This document shows, piece by piece, positions 3,584-35,210 of a stretch of 64,000 bases of DNA. The notes below the pieces were generated by a model. The model was given only the letters and a program-made list of their open reading frames with translations. It was not told the DNA's origin and made no database searches. Source of the stretch: Prasinococcaceae sp. CCMP 1430 (lineage: Eukaryota; Plantae; Prasinodermophyta); NCBI GenBank assembly GCA_013416795.1, contig RQSC01000016.1, forward strand, positions 1 to 64,000. Reading direction: 5' to 3'. Both the position numbers and the translations under genes were made by a program. The first letter of the stretch is position 1, and each line of letters starts with the position of its first letter.

Positions 3584-4069
3584 NNNNNNNNNNNNNNNNN
3601 NNNNNNNNNNNNNNNNNNNNNNNNNNNNNNNNNNNNNNNNNNNNNNNNNNNNNNNNNNNNNNNNNNNNNNNNNNNNNNNNNNNNNNNNNNNNNNNNNNNN
3701 NNNNNNNNNNNNNNNNNNNNNNNNNNNNNNNNNNNNNNNNNNNNNNNNNNNNNNNNNNNNNNNNNNNNNNNNNNNNNNNNNNNNNNNNNNNNNNNNNNNN
3801 NNNNNNNNNNNNNNNNNNNNNNNNNNNNNNNNNNNNNNNNNNNNNNNNNNNNNNNNNNNNNNNNNNNNNNNNNNNNNNNNNNNNNNNNNNNNNNNNNNNN
3901 NNNNNNNNNNNNNNNNNNNNNNNNNNNNNNNNNNNNNNNNNNNNNNNNNNNNNNNNNNNNNNNNNNNNNNNNNNNNNNNNNNNNNNNNNNNNNNNNNNNN
4001 NNNNNNNNNNNNNNNNNNNNNNNNNNNNNNNNNNNNNNNNNNNNNNNNNNNNNNNNNNNNNNNNNNNNN
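3584..4069. other. Assembly gap (others: 32925-33203, 41659-42593, 50635-50859; single N at 35797 and 44487)
   Basis: N runs in the sequence. Confidence 1.
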
Positions 4070-4122
4070 AGCCGCCTGGCGGCCACGCGCGGGCCGGCGG
4101 ACGCGGCAGACGCAACGGCGCA

Positions 4123-6354
4123 ATGGCGGACCGCAACTGGACGGGCCTGTCGGGTGAGGGCGCGGCGCTGGCGACTGGCTCGGGCGCTGGCCGGCACCTG
4201 CGCGCGGGTGGCGCGGCGCTGCTACTCGCCGCGGGTGAGGATGGCCGCGCCGCCGTGTGGGACTGCGACGCACGTAGGCTGGGCGCCACGCTGCCGCCGG
4301 TGGCCGCAGACGCGACGGGCAATGGCGGCGCCGCGAGCGCCGCCGCCGCCAGGAAAGGCCGCAGGCTATCGGGCTCGGGCGGCGCGGGCCACCTCGCGCT
4401 GCGGCTGAGCGTTGCTGCGTGGGCGCCGGCCGACGCGTGCAAGCAGGGCAAGCAGGGAAAGGCGGCGACGGCCGCAGCGGCGGCGGCCGCGCAGCGTCAC
4501 GTGGTGGGTTTCGGCACGCACGACGGCGACGTGCTGGTGTGGGACGTGTCCGCTGCGTCCGCCGCGTGGCGCGTCGCCGGCGCGCACGAGGGTGCGGTGC
4601 GTGCGCTCGCACTCTCCGCCGGTGGTGCGCGCGTCTTCTCCGGAGGTGATGATGGCAACGTGTGCGAGGTGGACGGCACCGCGCGCAGCGTGGTGCGCAC
4701 GTTTCGAGCGGCACAGCGGCCCATCGGCGCTCTCGCGCTCTCGCTGTGCGGCACGAGGCTGCTCAGCGGCGCGAGCCGCGTGACGCTGTGGGACGTGAGC
4801 GGCGACTGCAGCGGCGACGCGCCAGCGCGCGTCGCTAAGGTGTCCGGCCACGCGTCCGCAGTGGGCAGCGCCGCGTTCGCGCCCGACGGCCGGCTGGCGA
4901 TGACCGCCTCGCGTGACGAGCGCGAGGTGGCGCTGTGGGACGCTCGCGGCGGCGCTGGTAGCAGCGCGGCGGTGTGCCTGCTCGCATGTGACGCCGGTGT
5001 TGCGTCGGTGAGCTCCGCAGCGGTGAGCGGCGGCGCCGCCGCGCCGAAAGGAGCCTTCGTAGTGATGGCCCTCACCGTGGAGGGCGCCGCCTTCGTATGG
5101 CGCGTCTCGCCTGTCGGTGCAACGAAAAAGGGGAGCGTGAGTGCGGGCGCACTCTCGGTGTCTGCGCCTCCGCCTTGCGTGGTGAGGGTGAGCGGATCAA
5201 GCGGGGCACTGTGGGGGCTCTCCTCGGCGCGTGGTTCGAACGTCGGCGGCGCGTTCGCCGTTACGGTAGTGCACGGCTCACCCGCGCGGCCGACTGTGGG
5301 TACGCTTGAGTTCAGTGCGGGGGAGATGCGTGAGGGCGGCGCAGAGCGCACCGTGGAGCGCGAGGCCACTGGTGGCGCGCTGGCTGCTAGTGCGGGAGTT
5401 GCAGCAGGCAGCGTGCCTCAGGCGCGCGCGGCGCCCGCATCTGCGCCGCACGTGCTCGACGCGGAGATGATTGCCTCGGGGGCGCGTGCGGCCGACAAGC
5501 GCAAGCGCGGCGCGGACGCCGGAGAGGGAGACGAGGACGGCGCCGTCGGCTTGGCGGCAGCGGCTGAGCAGCAGGCGACTCTAGATGCGCTCGCGGGTGG
5601 CAGCGGCGGAGGAGAGCTGACGCTGGGCGAGCGTGTGGCCCGCCTCGCATTGGAGGGGGGTGGTGCCGCGGGCGCCGGTGGCAACAAGGATGGCGGCAAG
5701 GAAGGGCCGGGCGGTGGCACTGGTGGCGGTGCTGGCGGCAACTCTGTCGGATCAGTTGCGGTGCTGCTGGCCCAGGCGCTCGAGTCTCGCGATGAGGGCC
5801 TGCTGGAGCGTTGCCTGGCGGTAGGCAACGAGCGACAGGTGACTGCTTCCGTGGCCCGCCTGCCGCCCTCGCTGGCGGGCCCGCTGGTGGCCGCCGCCGC
5901 GTCGCGGCTGCGCGCCAAACCCACGCGTGCGGCGACACTATGCGTGTGGCTGCGTGCGTGCCTTGCAGCACATGCCGCCACGCTGATGGCGTCACCCGCG
6001 GCGCAGGCGGCACTGCACGAGCTTTATGCTGCTGTGGACGCGCGCACGGCGATGCTATCACCACTGCTGCAACTCCAGGGGAGGCTGCACCTCCTCGCGG
6101 CACAGGCTGGCATGGGAGAGGCCGGTGCTGCACCGGTTGCGCGTGCCGAGGCGCTCGACGCGCCAATGGCCACATTCGTGGACGATGGCGACGTAGAGGC
6201 GGTGGACGTTGCAGGGGACGGCCTCGACTCGGAGGAGGACCAGGACGGCTCGGACATGTCCGAAGAAGAAGAACTTGACGACCTGTCCGCTGACGAGGAC
6301 GACGAGGACGAAGACGACTATGCTGAGGAGGATCCCCTCAGCGACGAGGCGTGA
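4123..6354 (+). CDS. UTP5: WD40 + Utp12/Utp5 C-terminal domain protein (UTP5/WDR43-like, SSU processome)
   Basis: WD repeats (GDVLVWDV, GHASAVGSAAFAPDG, VALWD), then SVAVLLAQALESRDEGLLERCL...LQLQGRLHLL (Utp12-type domain) and an acidic tail. Confidence 0.8.
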   Translation: MADRNWTGLSGEGAALATGSGAGRHLRAGGAALLLAAGEDGRAAVWDCDARRLGATLPPVAADATGNGGAASAAAARKGRRLSGSGGAGHLALRLSVAAWAPADACKQGKQGKAATAAAAAAAQRHVVGFGTHDGDVLVWDVSAASAAWRVAGAHEGAVRALALSAGGARVFSGGDDGNVCEVDGTARSVVRTFRAAQRPIGALALSLCGTRLLSGASRVTLWDVSGDCSGDAPARVAKVSGHASAVGSAAFAPDGRLAMTASRDEREVALWDARGGAGSSAAVCLLACDAGVASVSSAAVSGGAAAPKGAFVVMALTVEGAAFVWRVSPVGATKKGSVSAGALSVSAPPPCVVRVSGSSGALWGLSSARGSNVGGAFAVTVVHGSPARPTVGTLEFSAGEMREGGAERTVEREATGGALAASAGVAAGSVPQARAAPASAPHVLDAEMIASGARAADKRKRGADAGEGDEDGAVGLAAAAEQQATLDALAGGSGGGELTLGERVARLALEGGGAAGAGGNKDGGKEGPGGGTGGGAGGNSVGSVAVLLAQALESRDEGLLERCLAVGNERQVTASVARLPPSLAGPLVAAAASRLRAKPTRAATLCVWLRACLAAHAATLMASPAAQAALHELYAAVDARTAMLSPLLQLQGRLHLLAAQAGMGEAGAAPVARAEALDAPMATFVDDGDVEAVDVAGDGLDSEEDQDGSDMSEEEELDDLSADEDDEDEDDYAEEDPLSDEA

Positions 6355-6401
6355 GGCAGGCCCATCCCGCACGTGGATGGACGCTGCGGCGTGGCGGGCG
6401 G

Positions 6402-6406
6402 TGTAA
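6402..6406 (+). promoter_or_regulatory. Candidate TGTAA polyadenylation signal (representative of several)
   Basis: TGTAA on the coding strand shortly after stops: 6402 (UTP5), 12415 (WD/coiled-coil gene), and on the minus strand 23573-23577 (receptor cyclase), 34642-34646 (SUMO), 43765-43769 (PDF). UGUAA is the known chlorophyte signal. Confidence 0.55.
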
Positions 6407-6476
6407 TTCGCATTTCTTCGAACGACCATGCGCCTGGCGCTCCCCTCGAGGCGCTCGCTCGTGCGACGTGCGTGAT

Positions 6477-7023
6477 TTACAGCGATGACACGAACAACTT
6501 GGCGCCACAAATGTTCTTGCCGTCCATCGCAGCGCGCGCTTTGGTCGCCGCTGCCGCATCGGCGAACGTGATGTAGCCGACAGGCGCCGCGCCTGTGGCG
6601 CTGGCCACAGTTGCGCTCGCGAGTGTGCCGAAGGAACTGAATGCCGCGCGCAGGTGGTCCCCAGAAAGTGCTGGCGGCAAGCCACGCACCAGCAGCGAAC
6701 ACCCTTCGGCGCCCTTCTCGTGGCCCTCGGGAGGGGGAGGGGGCGCGTCGCTACCGATGCCGCCACTTTGCTGGGTCTGGCTGTGCCACATCCGCTGCTG
6801 CGGCTGGCCGGCGGGGTACCCCCCGTGCGCCGGCAAGTGGGCGTAGCCAGCGTTTTGGTGCGCGTACGCGCTGCTGTAGTGCGCAATGCCCGCAGCACCC
6901 CTGCCTGCAACCAGCTCGCTCACCATCTGTTTAGCACGCGCAACGGCAGTCTCGGTGCCCGAGAAGGTCACGATGTGCGTGTGCGGGTCGACCTGAACCT
7001 GCGGCACCGTCGCATGCGCACAT

Positions 7024-7094
<71 letters not shown>

Positions 7095-7900
7095 CGCGCG
7101 CGCGTGCGTGTGCGCGTGCACCGATGGCAGTCAGGTACTCTGAGAGTGGCGCGCGATCGTAGTGGCACATGCATGGGCACCTGACGGAATACCTTGCACC
7201 CCGAGGTCGATTCGACGGCCTTGATGTTCACGCCGCGCGTGCCGATGATGCGGCCGACGACGCTCTTGTCCATCGGTTGCGAGAAATCTAGCATCTGCGC
7301 GGCTGCAGGCACGGACGCGTGCGTATGTACGGGCGTTGAGATTGCACCCGCAGGCCTCGCCCATGACGACTCGGCGGTCCGAGTATTGTAGTAGTACGTG
7401 TGGCCGCTCTTTGGATCGACGCCGTGCACCCACTCGGACGCGGCAGTTGAAGTCGCCGTGGCCGTCGCGGCCGGGCCGCTCGTGTCTGCGGGCGCCTTGC
7501 GTTTCATGCCACGTGCTGCGCTGCCATCGCTTGTGGGGTCGATGGCGGCGGCAGCGACGGGTGGCGTTTCCTCCGCGGCGTCGGCCTTCTTCGCGGGCAC
7601 TGTGGGAGCAACGGTGGCCCCGGCGGCCGCGCCCTGTGGCTCGGAGACTGCCTCATTGACCTGCTTGGGCCCCTCATCCGCTTGCTCGGCCTCCTCTACG
7701 GCCCCCACTTCAACTTGCTCAGCCTCCTCTTCGGCCCCCTCATCCGCTTGCTCGACATCCTTGTTGGCCTCCTCCGCCGCGATGGCCTCCTCGAGCCTCG
7801 CGACCAGAGCGGCTTTGAGCCCCTTCGAGTCGAGCCCGCGCTTCTTGAGCGCGGCACGGAGCTCGACCACTTTCATCTTGCTCACCGCCGAGGCGGCCAT
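6477..7900 (-). CDS. SAP-WW-KH-RRM nucleic-acid-binding protein; join(7900..7193, 6998..6477)
   Basis: SAP (KMKVVELRAALKKRGLDSKGLKAALVARL), WW (EW...YYYNTRTAESSWARP), KH GxxG (IIGTRGVNIK) completed across GT-AG intron 6999-7192, RRM (LLVRGLP...GYITF). Confidence 0.82.
7027..7088. repeat. (TG)31 microsatellite in an intron, followed by a (GC)n/GTGC alternating tract
   Basis: Read directly from the sequence; lies inside intron 6999-7192. Confidence 0.97.
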
Positions 7901-8234
7901 CGCGCGCTCGCGCTCGCGCGCTCGCGAGCGCGTGAATGGCGCTCGTGCTGCGCGAGTCGCGCTCGCTGAAGCCGGCGCCGCGGTGGCGTGCGTGGCCGCC
8001 GCCGCCGCCGCAGTGGCTCGCGCCGCTCCGGCCCTCGAGAGCGGCGCGGCCGAGCGCAGGTCGCCGCCTCGGCTGAAACCCGAACCTTCACTACAGAACT
8101 AATGTAATGTATTTTGATCTGAACCAACAACACGTACAGCACATGTACGGTATATTTAGGGTAGAGGGTACAGGGAACATCAACTCCACCGTGAAATCGT
8201 GCGTTGCATGAGGGGCGTGTGGTGCTGTGCTTGC

Positions 8235-9634
8235 TTAGGGGAGCGGGTGGGCGTTACCAAGGTCGTTGACATGGTAGCCGTCGGCGTAGGCGTAATCACC
8301 GCTGCCGTCGCCCGTCCGGTAGAGGTTGAAGAGGGGCACGAGTGCGCCGCATGGGGCGCGCGCGACGCCGTCTGGGCTGGCGCCTGTACCGGCGTGAACG
8401 TCGGGAGGGGTGCGGCGCACGATGCGCCGGCGGGGGAGCATGAGCCACCGTATAATCTGTGCGGTGAGGGTTGCGGGCGGCCATGCGCGCCTCATCGTCA
8501 GCATCGGGTCTTGCAATGCGAGGCGCCTGCCATTCTGTGATGGCCACGCACGCGCACGTACCAAAGCTCGTAGCTTCAGCGCGGCGTGCAACGCGACTGT
8601 GAGGAAATTAGGCGACGAGGGATAGTCCATGGCCCTCCTGAGTCGGTCGTCAAGCATGGCATACACGCACCACCTTGCAATGCCCCTCGCAGGCCCTGGC
8701 ACCACCGACAGCATCATTGCGATGGTCGTGTCCCCGATGCGCGGGTTGTCCTCTGAGTACTTCATCTCGCTCCTCTCGTACTCCTCGCTCTCCTCGGCCA
8801 TCTTTTCAAGCGACTCAGGGACCCCGCCGATGCCCATTCTCTCCCCAACCCGCCGCCAGTACATGAAGAGAGCGTTGCGTTCCGCAGGGGTGGTGTCTCG
8901 CCAGCCGAAGCGCTCTGTCCAGCGCAGTGGTTCGAGGACGAAGAGGCTCAGCTTTGCATGGCGGTCCCATCCGGGCGGGCAGGTGGGCCTCGGCGTCAGC
9001 ACCGGGTCTCGCGATGCTAGGCGCGCGTCTTCTACATCGAGATCTGCCCACGCACCACGTATCGAAAGGCAGCGTCGCGAGCTTCCTTGCCCCCGGGTAC
9101 ACGCGCGCGCGCGGCGTGTATTGCGTTCATGCGCGCGAGCGCGCGGGCGTGGCGTGCGGAGCACTCTCCGTTCTCGGCCATCTCACGCAGCAGCAGGTCG
9201 GTGTCATCATAGCGCACAGCGGCGTCTGCCTCAAAGCCGCCCGAAGCCACAAGCGATGCGCTCACGGCAGGAATGGCGTACGATCGGAACAGAGCGAACT
9301 CGAGCGACGTGCGCCACAGCCATGGCATGTCAACGCCGGCAAAGCCGCGGAGCAGTTCGAGGCGGTCGTCGTCGTCTTCTGGGTCGAGCGCCGCCCGCGC
9401 GCGCGACCTCGAGTGCCGAGCAAGCGCGACGGCGCACGCGTACACCGTGAGAGCCGCCGGCAAGGCACAACAGGCAGCACCGGCGCCCACCGTTGGGAGT
9501 GCACAAGCTGTGTGCGCTCGTCCTTGCCGCGATGGGGCGTGCGGCAACCAGGCAGCGCGAGATGACAGCGTCCGCACAACGGGCCGCACGAAGCGCGGCC
9601 CTGGCACCCGCGCGCTTGGCCGAGCGACCGCCAT
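8235..9634 (-). CDS. DUF2236/MpaB-like ER-bound oxygenase family protein; about join(9634..9056, 8951..8562, 8456..8235)
   Basis: Motifs ALFRSYAIP, RYDDTDLL, ARMNAIH, YV|LSLFVLEPLRW and YWRRVGERMGI. Two GT-AG introns restore the frame. Start codon uncertain. Confidence 0.72.
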
Positions 9635-31052: not shown

Positions 31053-32883
31053 TCAGAGCTTGGCGCGGACGCGGCGCCCCTTGTCGTGCTTGCCATCGGC
31101 AATCTCCTTGCGCAGCTCGCGCTTGCTCATTTTGCCCGTCGCGGTCCTCGGGATGGCGTCCACGAAGATGACCTCGTCTGGAATCCACCACTTCGGAACG
31201 CGGCCGTGGTAGACCGCCAGGACGGCAGCGGCGCTCACGGACGCGCCGGGCTTGCACACCACGCACAGTGCCGGGCGCTCGTCGTACTGCGGATGGGGAA
31301 CGCCCACGCAGCAGGCCTCGGCAACTCCAGGGGCGCTCAGAGCCAGGTTCTCGACGTCAATAGAGCTGATCCATTCGCCACCCGACTTGATGACGTCCTT
31401 GTTGCGATCCACAATGCTCACAAATCCATGCGAGTCGATGGTGGCGATGTCACCTGTCGCAGCCGCGCCGAGGCAGATAGCAGAGGCGGCGAGTGAGTTA
31501 GCAGGCGCTGTGGGCTCTGAGATGACCGCAAAGGCAAGGCTGCTCGCATCACGCACCTGTGTCGAAAAAGCCCTGCGGGTCGAGGACGTCGTCCAGCCGC
31601 GGGTCGTGCACCGAAGAACGAGACGTGCTCTTGAAGTACGTTTGGATCACACTGGGCCCATTCACCATGAGCCGACCGATCGTCTTGCCGTCGCGCGGTA
31701 ACTCGCGGTCCGAGTCGTGCGCGGACACCTTCATGTCGTTTATCCATTGCGTTCGACCCGCCTTCATCATGTACGCTGTGCGCTCAGCGCGCGTCGTCGG
31801 CGCGACGCCGCGCTTGAGCGCAAAGTTGGTGCCCAGCGGGCCCATCTCAGTCATGCCCCATGCCTGCACGAGAGTAACGCCATAGCGCTCTTCGAAAGCC
31901 TCGATGACTGACGCCGCGGGCGCTGCGCCACCGACGATCGCGCGCTTCAGAGTGCGCAGCGGATCCTTGCCCGCTTTGCCGCTGTCGAGGTGCGCGAGGA
32001 TGTCGATGTAAAGCGTGGGCACGCCTGTCATGAGTGTGGCTCCATGTACGCGCGCGAGCGATACGAGCGCAGGGCCGCTGACGTCCCGGCCAGGCAGCAC
32101 CACGCCCGCGCCTGCCAGCGGGCAGCTGAAGACGAGCCCCCACGCGTTGGCGTGATACATGGCCGCGCCACAGAGCACGGTGTCGGTGGCGCTCAGGTGG
32201 AGGCTGTCCGCCCCCAGCTCAGACATGGCGTGGAGAAAGTTCGATCTGTGCGTGTATACAACTCCCTTGGGAGCGCCCGTGGTACCGCTGGTGAAGCTCA
32301 GCCCACACGGCGAGCGCTCATCGAAGGGCAAGCCCCCGAACCACGAGTAGCTGCCGCCGAGTTCCGCGGCCACCAGCGCTTCGAAGGTCTCGAGCTGGCC
32401 TCGCACGCCAGCCTCGGTGACTGCGCGCTCGCCAGCGGCACCGTCGACCATTGCCACCCCCCTGGCGAGCAAGTCGCCGCACGGCCCGCCTCGTTTTTCC
32501 AGCTCGGCCTGCAGCGCGGCCATTTCAGGGGCGCAGTGCTCGTCGACGAAGAAGACGCGATCCTGCGCGGCGTGCACGATATCCGCGAGTTGTGAAACAA
32601 AGTACCGCGGGTTGAGCGTGTGCACGACGGCGCCGCACCCCATGATGGCCCACCACGCCATCATGTGGCGCTCGGAGTTGAAGCTCATCGTCGCGACGTG
32701 CTGGCCTCGCCGTACGCCGCGTGCCACGAGCGCGCGCGCGAGCGCGAGCGCGCGCTCGCGAACGCGCGCCCACGTCGACCCGCCGCCTGCCGAGCCCGCG
32801 CAGGCCACCGGCGCATCGCCGTGCCATCGCGCCGCGTGGTCCAGGCAGCGGGTGACGTGGAGGTCCCACTCCTGCATGCTCAT
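31053..32883 (-). CDS. Acyl-CoA ligase (AlkK/DmdB-like adenylate-forming enzyme) with C-terminal PTS1; join(32883..31557, 31453..31053)
   Basis: FTSGTTGAPKG, QAWGMTE, FFDTG|DIAT, IKSGGEWISS and TGKMSK. Ends in -AKL-stop. Confidence 0.9.
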
Positions 32884-33203
32884 CGCGCGTCCGCCTGCCC
32901 CGCTCCGCCCCGCGCGGAGCGCGGNNNNNNNNNNNNNNNNNNNNNNNNNNNNNNNNNNNNNNNNNNNNNNNNNNNNNNNNNNNNNNNNNNNNNNNNNNNN
33001 NNNNNNNNNNNNNNNNNNNNNNNNNNNNNNNNNNNNNNNNNNNNNNNNNNNNNNNNNNNNNNNNNNNNNNNNNNNNNNNNNNNNNNNNNNNNNNNNNNNN
33101 NNNNNNNNNNNNNNNNNNNNNNNNNNNNNNNNNNNNNNNNNNNNNNNNNNNNNNNNNNNNNNNNNNNNNNNNNNNNNNNNNNNNNNNNNNNNNNNNNNNN
33201 NNN

Positions 33204-34389
33204 GCGGCGGGCGCGGCGATTGGCGCCGGCGCGGCGCTGCCCGCGCTCGCGGCGGGGCCTGGTAAGGCTGCCACGCACGTGGTCGCGAGCGGCGACTGCC
33301 TCTCGGTGATCGCCTCGCGCTACGGCTGCTCTGTCGAAGACCTCATGGCCGCTAACGGCATCGATGACTCCGACAAGATCGAGGCTGGACAGAAGCTCCG
33401 TGTCCCCAAGGAGGACACGAAGGTGCGGGGCCTGCGCGCTCTGCCCCCACCCCAACACGCATGCACACGTGCCTCTTCCGCCATTTCCCGCGCCGTAGCT
33501 TGCGTACGCATTCTGAGCGACTGACGCGCGAGTCGCGCTCTGCTCTTGGCGTGCATCCGCGCGCGCGCGCGCTCGCCTGATCCCGCAGACGTTCGAGTTT
33601 GCACGCTTCATGGCCGCAGGCGGCATCGCCGGCTGCACCGTTGAGACGGTGCTCTTCCCCCTGGACACCATCAAGACGCGTCTGCAGGCCGCGCGCGCCG
33701 GCAAGGGCCTGGACCTGCGCGGGCTGTACAACGGCCTCGGGGGCAACATCCCCGGCTGCTTCGCCGCCAGCGCCATCTTCTTCGGTGTGTACGATCCTCT
33801 GAAGAAGCGCCTCGAGGAAGGCTGGGGGAAGGGCTCTACCTCCGCGCACCTGGTTTCGGCCGCGAGCGCCGGCCTGGTGTCGAGCGTGGTGCGCGTGCCC
33901 ACCGAGGTCGTCAAGCAGCGCTTGCAGACGGGGCAGTTCAACGGCCCTGTGGAGGCCGTCAAGACTATCTTCAAGTCGGAGGGCGTGCGCGGCTTCACGC
34001 GCGGCTACGGTGCTTTCCTGCTGCGTGATCTGCCCTTTGATGCCATCGAGTTCGTGGCGTACGAGGGCCTCAAGACCCAGTACACGAGATACAAGGGCCG
34101 TCGCATCGAGCCTGCGGAGGCGAGCGTGCTGGGAGGCATCGCCGGCGCCTTCACGGGCGCGGCGACGACCCCGCTGGACGTCCTCAAGACGCGTTTCATG
34201 ACCGGCGGCGCGAGCGTCAAGTACAAGGGCCTCGTTGATGCGGCGGCAACCATTGCGCGTGAGGAGGGCTGGAGGGCGCTCTTCGCCGGCGTGCAGCCGC
34301 GCGTGACCTGGATCGGCATCGGTGGCTTCATCTTCTTCGGCTGCCTCGAGAAGTCACGCGAGATCCTGGGGGTTGCCGACGAGATGTAG
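33204..34389 (+). CDS. SAMC1: LysM domain fused to an S-adenosylmethionine carrier (mitochondrial carrier family, SAMC1-like); join(<33204..33422, 33589..34389), 5' end in gap
   Basis: LysM THVVASGDCLSVIASRYGCSVEDLMAANGIDDSDKIEAGQKLRVP. Phase-0 GT-AG intron 33423-33588. Three carrier signatures (PLDTIKTRLQ, PTEVVKQRLQ, PLDVLKTRF) plus RDLPFDAI and RVTWIGIGG. Confidence 0.85.
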
Positions 34390-34705: not shown

Positions 34706-35210
34706 TCAGAGCCCGCCGACCTGCTCGAGGAAGGCGTCGATCTCGTCGTTGTCCTCCATGTCGAGCTCCGCAGGCGACTGGTTCTCGTTGAGGCGCATGC
34801 CGTCGAACACGAAGCGGATCGAGTCCTGGCCGATCGCTTGCCTCTCTGCGTACGCCTTCATCATCTGCGTGCGGGCGCGGGCGACATGCGACCAGCGTGT
34901 GGCGGGTGTTCGCAAGAGTCAGCGTATGGGCCGCGCCGACCAGACGCTACCTCCCCGCGGCAGCGCGCGACGCCTGATCCTCGCCATTGGCACCGCCAGG
35001 CAGTGCGATGAATCTGTAGAATCACAGGGCAGTGCCACGCGCGCACCCTCCCTCCACAGGCAGTTGCAAACGCACGCGCTCGCCCGCCCCTCGAGCGACC
35101 AAGGCCAGCGGGATCTCCCCACTCCCAAGCCACCGCCGCCGCCGCAGCAGCATGCGCACCTTGCCCAGCTTCGCAGTCTTCTTGATCTTGAAGAAAACCT
35201 CCTGCCCGTC
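34706..35210 (-). CDS. SUMO: SUMO (first exon not found); join(35210..35160, 34864..34706)
   Basis: DGQEVFFKIKKTAKLGK|MMKAYAERQ...IRFVFDGMRL...LDMEDNDEIDAFLEQVGG-L: di-Gly plus one residue. Confidence 0.9.

Follow-up and report, generated by a model that had tools for sequence, protein, structure and literature searches.

The window analysed here, the first 64,000 nucleotides of contig RQSC01000016.1 (Prasinococcaceae sp. CCMP 1430, GenBank assembly GCA_013416795.1), contains a nuclear gene of the marine green picoalga Prasinoderma coloniale that joins a LysM domain to a metabolite carrier. The gene consists of an N-terminal leader that falls within an assembly gap, an Ala/Gly-rich segment with the motif AALPALA, one LysM domain, a linker of about six residues, and a complete carrier of the S-adenosylmethionine (SAM) carrier, or SAMC, type. 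The surrounding DNA is GC-rich (~60-73% GC) and eukaryotic. On its plus strand the frame is open from 33204, where it encodes AAGAAIGAGAALPALAAGPGKAAT, followed by the LysM domain, HVVASGDCLSVIASRYGCSVEDLMAANGIDDSDKIEAGQKLRVPKEDTK. The carrier exon, which opens TFEFARFMAAGG..., lies in phase 0 with the LysM exon, and the LysM frame, if left unspliced, runs into a stop within the intron. An earlier note on this stretch, made from the letters alone, had described a gap of Ns at 32925-33203, a complete LysM at 33273-33407, a GTGCGG donor at 33423 after ...EDTK, a 166-nt intron with CTGAC and CTGAT that ends CCCGCAG at 33588, an early stop in the unspliced frame, and a three-repeat carrier in frame with the next exon. 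All of these features were found again, with the Pfam match to the LysM running full-length from 33276 to 33407 (Table 1).

Carrier and LysM domains

The carrier part matches Pfam PF00153 (Mito_carr) in three stretches (E = 1.3e-54), and the PX[DE]XX[KR] signatures on helices 1, 3 and 5 are intact (PLDTIK, PTEVVK and PLDVLK, beginning at 33658, 33898 and 34171). Functionally named proteins among the 120 listed matches are SAMC1, SAMC2 or SLC25A26-type SAM transporters, with identities of 53-59%, and the published protein for this gene (P0001, described below) retains 23 of the 23 columns that are invariant in an alignment of 60 SAM-carrier-like sequences. A predicted structure of the orthologue P0002, whose carrier is 87% identical to that of the window, is a six-helix bundle that matches UCP1 and the ADP/ATP carrier with a probability of 1.0 (Foldseek). 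Three repeats, intact signatures and all family-invariant columns are likewise what the protein has in common with plant SAMC1 (Arabidopsis At4g39460), yeast Sam5p and human SLC25A26. By these comparisons the carrier is SAMC1-type, as the earlier note had proposed, and a tightly conserved orthologue of organellar SAM carriers. A carrier that moves GlcNAc or muropeptides was for this reason rejected as the principal interpretation.

Pfam PF01476 aligns with residues 25-68 of the open frame over model positions 1-43 of 43 (E = 8e-16, 58.2 bits, against a curated cut-off of 20.9 bits). The LysMs of the three lineages discussed below score 58.2, 55.0 and 45.8 bits, each over model positions 1-43 or 2-43 and all above the cut-off. 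The nearest solved structure is the LysM pair of a Thermus thermophilus NlpC/P60 D,L-endopeptidase (4uz2, 4uz3, 4xcm; E = 5.7e-19), and a word-based search with the LysM part returned only members of the same cluster and bacterial LysM wall hydrolases of the M23, M74 and SLT types. In an AlphaFold model of P0002, computed from a 60-sequence alignment (mean pLDDT 85.5, pTM 0.75), the domain adopts the beta-alpha-alpha-beta fold over residues 30-72 with pLDDT values of 86-93, and it superposes on 4uz3, the bound form of the T. thermophilus wall-hydrolase LysM, at 0.8 A over 47 residues with 53% identity (Foldseek). Candidate glycan-binding motifs are kept across the lineages as G-D-C-L, G-D-S-L or G-E-T-L plus an Asn, a correspondence of motif conservation only, and the T. 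thermophilus domains carry the same G-[DE]-x-L and Asn motifs. The bacterial domains are tandem and belong to a secreted wall hydrolase, whereas the LysM described here is a single copy on a eukaryotic membrane transporter. Profile, motifs and predicted fold identify it as a canonical LysM of the bacterial wall-binding kind. The LysM of the kinetoplastid mitoribosomal protein uS10m (7ane, 7aor, 6sg9, 6hiv, 9hny) also matches this domain, with E values from 1e-8 (7ane) to 2e-4.

Table 1. Features of the LysM-carrier gene, in window coordinates
Feature	Position	Strand	Remarks
Assembly gap	32925-33203		279 N; the LysM-carrier gene has its start codon and N-terminal targeting part inside it
Ala/Gly-rich pre-LysM segment, with AALPALA at 33231-33251	33204-33275	+	may be the end of a sorting/targeting peptide, or a flexible tail
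Single LysM domain (CBM50), with G-D-C-L at 33291-33302 and conserved Asn in AANGI at 33348-33362	33276-33407	+	Pfam PF01476
Exon end, linker KEDTK ahead of the donor site	33408-33422	+	sequence reading
166-nt GT..AG intron (GTGCGG ... CCCGCAG), phase 0	33423-33588	+	in-frame stop at 33522-33524 if retained; CTGAC and CTGAT inside
Carrier exon, SAMC-type mitochondrial-family carrier, stop TAG at 34387-34389	33589-34389	+	three Pfam PF00153 stretches; 266 residues
First internal ATG of the carrier exon	33610	+	sequence reading
Carrier signature motifs PLDTIKTR 33658-33681, PTEVVKQR 33898-33921, PLDVLKTR 34171-34194	within 33589-34389	+	motif reading
LLRDLPF on helix 4	34018-34038	+	motif reading

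Evidence for a single gene and its distribution

The splice junction between the LysM and the carrier is not new, as a public gene model already contains it. The carrier exon is 100% identical to the EukProt protein PRCOL_00005214-RA (P0001) of P. coloniale, a 292-residue sequence in which ...KEDTK is joined to TFEFARF..., exactly the 33422/33589 junction. This model starts at a Met inside the LysM (MAANGIDD..., 33345), because the sequence upstream runs into the gap, and its precomputed Pfam record therefore lists PF00153 only and leaves the LysM unrecorded. By truncating the public gene model, the assembly gap has made the domain combination invisible in its record. The P. coloniale annotation was produced with MAKER and assembled RNA-seq, and 6,996 of its 7,139 models are reported to be transcript-supported, a figure for the whole annotation and not for this junction (PMC7455551).

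More importantly, the two domains occur together in two further Prasinoderma-like lineages recovered from ocean metagenomes. In the second lineage, represented by P0002, P0126 and P0132 (350 residues) with the 87% identical carrier, PF01476 and PF00153 are found in one unbroken frame, and the corresponding loci (L001 and L002) are genomic DNA, on metagenome scaffolds of Tara Oceans and on Logan assemblies that reach 11.7 kb. In the third (L012, from Logan SRR31805816) the LysM runs directly into the carrier, ...VPKTSTWEFARFMAAGG..., and an intron of ~100 nt follows ...AREEG (about 1056-1160); the presence of that separate intron shows the locus to be genomic DNA rather than a transcript. An alignment of the three proteins is continuous across the position of the P. 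coloniale junction and shows conservation to either side of it, and neither L012 nor L001/L002 has an intron there. Introns have thus turned over within the gene, that between LysM and carrier being present in P. coloniale only and that after ...AREEG in L012.

L002 shows no synteny with the window in its flanks. Its neighbours at 3878-9280 encode a NUDIX hydrolase, a cyclophilin-TPR protein and a tyrosine phosphatase-like protein, wholly unlike those in the window. Because gene order differs, the linkage of the domains is not a by-product of the recent common ancestry of a whole block, and the same LysM-carrier order in two independent related lineages is more than chance. Pairwise dN/dS among the three lineages is 0.43-0.49 for the LysM and 0.07-0.22 for the carrier (dS ~0.5-1.3). 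On these ratios the LysM evolves faster than the carrier yet is maintained, and purifying selection acts on the architecture.

Taken together, the shared frames and the aligned junction indicate that LysM and carrier are almost certainly one fused gene, the conclusion drawn in the earlier note. That note had also remarked that carrier-like sequence precedes the first internal ATG at 33610, and in the P0002 model helix 1 does begin 11 residues before the equivalent Met, so that a start there would truncate the carrier. It is accordingly very improbable that P. coloniale has two separate genes, for a small LysM protein and for a carrier that starts at 33610, and that the fusion is an annotation artefact: prokaryote-style gene callers do start the carrier at that ATG on metagenome contigs (P0121), but in the relatives a single continuous frame spans both parts, sequence conservation extends to either side of the junction and not to the unspliced tail, a start at 33610 cuts away part of helix 1, and the MAKER model, from an RNA-seq-based annotation with the overall transcript support given above, joins the exons.

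On present evidence, the fusion is confined to the Prasinoderma clade, where it occurs in at least three Prasinoderma-like lineages. No other protein with LysM and carrier was present among the 150 best-scoring carrier clusters in a HMMER search of 1.84 billion cluster representatives, a search in which the fusion itself is hidden, as it sits in a 50% cluster represented by a LysM-less protein. LysM domains were found in none of 10 SAM-carrier relatives with long N-terminal extensions and, using a hidden Markov model built from the three LysMs, in none of 80 SAM-carrier-like loci (at most 53% identity) from JGI metagenomes; the scan of those metagenomes yielded no close relatives. Full-text literature searches found no paper describing a LysM-carrier or LysM-SAM-carrier fusion, in keeping with the earlier note, which knew of none. 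Other unusual SAM-carrier-like proteins do occur among the database representatives (P0144, P0145, P0148, P0150 and P0151). One of them, 673 residues long, has an F-box ahead of the carrier together with a weak LRR_4 match below threshold, and several of ~570-660 residues have two carrier-length matches, which may be real tandem fusions or merged gene models.

Topology, location and possible function

In the P0002 model the LysM is followed by a linker of ~10 residues and then by helix 1. In P. coloniale and L012, whose linkers are shorter by 7-9 residues, ~6 residues separate the last LysM strand from helix 1 (as compared with ~13-14 by alignment). The N-terminus of helix 1 in the carrier family lies on the cytoplasmic, or intermembrane-space, side. 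A LysM tethered to it by 6-10 residues must therefore face the intermembrane space, within a few nm of the membrane, whichever organelle houses the protein. The short linker thus agrees with the placement proposed in the earlier note.

Members of the carrier family are almost always bare six-helix bundles, and EF-hand domains are the only well-studied N-terminal additions. The ATP-Mg/Pi carriers (SCaMC/APC) and the aspartate/glutamate carriers (aralar, citrin) resemble the present protein in having a soluble ligand-binding domain N-terminal to the carrier, on the intermembrane-space side, and no other precedent for a domain fused in this position has been well studied. The relationship is one of analogy and not of membership: here a single 44-residue LysM is held on a linker of 6-10 residues, Pfam finds LysM only and no EF-hand in the N-terminal part, and a regulatory role would be pure inference. 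Plant SAMC1 offers a second comparison, as it too has an N-terminal extension ahead of the carrier core; in that protein the extension is a transit peptide only, whereas here it includes a predicted folded LysM. As far as these sequences and models indicate, a SAM importer with a conserved, predicted glycan-binding domain on its intermembrane-space side is a new architecture, and the phylum that has it is one whose chloroplasts are predicted to retain a wall of peptidoglycan.

We propose, with a probability of roughly 0.45 for the full chain of steps, that the fusion is a SAM importer of the plastid inner envelope whose LysM binds glycan of the plastid wall. The carrier would exchange cytosolic SAM for S-adenosylhomocysteine across the organelle inner membrane, as Arabidopsis SAMC1 does (PMC3355725). 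The protein would sit in the plastid inner envelope, and its LysM would bind the GlcNAc-containing glycan of plastid peptidoglycan, either in the mature layer or in nascent strands near the membrane. Such binding would keep the carrier in place or set its position, and would link the inner envelope to the wall. This appears to be the best and most economical interpretation because a complete peptidoglycan pathway is reported in P. coloniale, with all ten core synthesis enzymes described by Li et al. (PMC7455551); because plastid peptidoglycan, where it has been localised, in a moss chloroplast, lies in the intermembrane space, according to later papers that cite Sato et al. (2017); and because SAMC1 extensions can direct proteins to plastids, the N-terminal extension of the plant protein carrying GFP there (PMC3355725).

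Several considerations weigh against this proposal. The very short linker limits the reach of the LysM to a few nm. Single LysM domains usually bind weakly, mitochondria have no peptidoglycan, and we know of no role for SAM in peptidoglycan synthesis or of any biochemical link between the two. A weak, single LysM on so short a tether would favour nascent strands, or a wall that lies close against the inner membrane. The kinetoplastid uS10m protein is an example of a LysM in an organelle without peptidoglycan. In Chlorokybus and Closterium, streptophyte algae that have retained genes for plastid peptidoglycan, the SAM carriers lack a LysM, so a walled plastid does not in general need the fusion. 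In plants, full-length SAMC1 occurs in both mitochondria and plastids (PMC3355725), and a peptidoglycan layer has not been physically demonstrated in Prasinodermophyta (PMC10784329).

If the LysM does bind that wall, the connection of the plastid envelope with its relic wall would have a concrete molecular basis that can be tested, and the domain would be a ready-made probe for the existence of the wall in Prasinodermophyta. A bolder claim, which we consider unlikely, is that the LysM makes this the first known organelle metabolite carrier to physically read or hold the relic bacterial wall of the plastid, either as a gate on SAM import that responds to wall fragments in the intermembrane space or, in a green alga, as a tether from inner envelope to peptidoglycan. 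Were this true, the deepest-branching green phylum would have in this protein a natural and genetically encoded marker of plastid peptidoglycan.

It is also conceivable, if somewhat unlikely, that the fusion works in mitochondria, alone or besides plastids, and that the LysM has a role unrelated to peptidoglycan, such as protein contact, an aid to import or topology, or the binding of another intermembrane-space ligand. Mitochondria need imported SAM, and a second P. coloniale SAM carrier did not turn up, in the course of work that included no search aimed at one. The uS10m LysM, part of an organelle protein with no peptidoglycan nearby, and the higher dN/dS of the LysM (~0.45 vs ~0.1-0.2 for the carrier) are compatible with such a role, as is the mitochondrial location of full-length plant SAMC1 noted above. 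Against it, the LysM keeps its full canonical profile in three lineages and is most like the bacterial wall-binding LysMs to which the structural match was obtained, in a host for which the complete peptidoglycan pathway is reported.

A third possibility, which we regard as doubtful, is that the LysM is a ligand sensor or gate rather than an anchor, and that it would bind soluble wall fragments, for example muropeptides or GlcNAc oligomers, in the intermembrane space and thereby switch SAM import on or off. By analogy, N-terminal regulatory domains that face the intermembrane space are established in the ATP-Mg/Pi and aspartate/glutamate carriers, and with so short a linker the LysM lies at the carrier mouth, next to the end of helix 1 that faces the cytoplasmic side. 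However, no LysM is known to act allosterically on a transporter, and both the length of the linker (~6 vs ~13-14 residues) and its sequence vary between lineages, which speaks against docking in a precise geometry.

Finally, the Ala/Gly leader might be a signal peptide that places the carrier in the endomembrane system or plasma membrane, with the LysM turned to the lumen or outside and bound to a GlcNAc-containing cell-wall glycan; AAAAGAAGAAIGAGAALPALAA does resemble a signal-peptide core followed by an A-x-A site, and plant members of the family are known from the endoplasmic reticulum and plasma membrane (PMC3355725). This arrangement is improbable, as the carrier is highly conserved and orthologous to the SAM carriers of organelles, and as the organelle transit peptides of GC-rich algae are typically rich in Ala and Gly as well.

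The N-terminal leader and neighbouring genes

The motif AALPALA is common to all three lineages, and AAIGAGAALPALAA may be the end of a bipartite targeting peptide, a putative assignment in which the motif is conserved and the N-terminal part is absent from all three sequences. A comparison can be drawn with Toc75, whose bipartite transit peptide includes a glycine-rich envelope-sorting part that is cleaved by the type I signal peptidase Plsp1. The likeness consists of the Ala/Gly stretch with A-x-A-like sites (AALPALAAG) ahead of a predicted intermembrane-space domain; it is compositional only, and any cleavage site here would be putative. In the AlphaFold model, residues 1-26 of P0002 are disordered, with pLDDT below 50.

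The earlier note had suggested closing the gap to obtain the N-terminus, and the nine public contigs examined did not recover the start codon. These P. coloniale-like contigs (L003-L011), from independent Tara and Logan assemblies, all stop at ~33186-33336, where the reference gap also lies, and the one that extends farthest into it (L008) adds only 15 nt, encoding AAAAG. Such agreement between nine contigs and the reference suggests that the gap is not random but reflects a GC-rich stretch, coding for Ala and Gly, that is difficult for assemblers. There is no ATG on the plus strand of 32884-32924, and the upstream minus-strand gene starts at 32883; fewer than ~100 codons are therefore missing, if the size of the gap is right.

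In L001/L002 and L012 the frame is closed just upstream of AALPALA, and a likely phase-2 acceptor (...cag|C GCC) is present at the same relative position (~181 in L001 and ~2819 in L002). These loci therefore appear to have an upstream exon; P. coloniale is without the putative acceptor. The initial 'M' of P0002 was rejected as a true start, being a GTG picked by a prokaryotic gene caller with an in-frame stop upstream. Enumeration of ATG-to-donor intervals for exon 1 of the relatives gave many in-frame options, such as an Arg/Ser/Ala-rich one at L002 2218-2390, and GC3 periodicity did not single out any candidate. A first exon 1 candidate in L001 was dropped, as L002 diverges there.

Within the window, the LysM-carrier gene lies head-to-head with a 444-residue open reading frame (ORF) on the minus strand (31549-32883) that carries an AMP-binding signature (...SFTSGTTGAPKGV...) and is acyl-CoA synthetase-like; the promoter region common to the two is in or beside the gap. 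On the other side, at 34706-34915 on the minus strand and tail-to-tail with the carrier gene, is the last exon of a SUMO-like protein (...DAFLEQVGG), whose ORF on near-identical metagenome contigs matches Pfam Rad60-SLD/ubiquitin.

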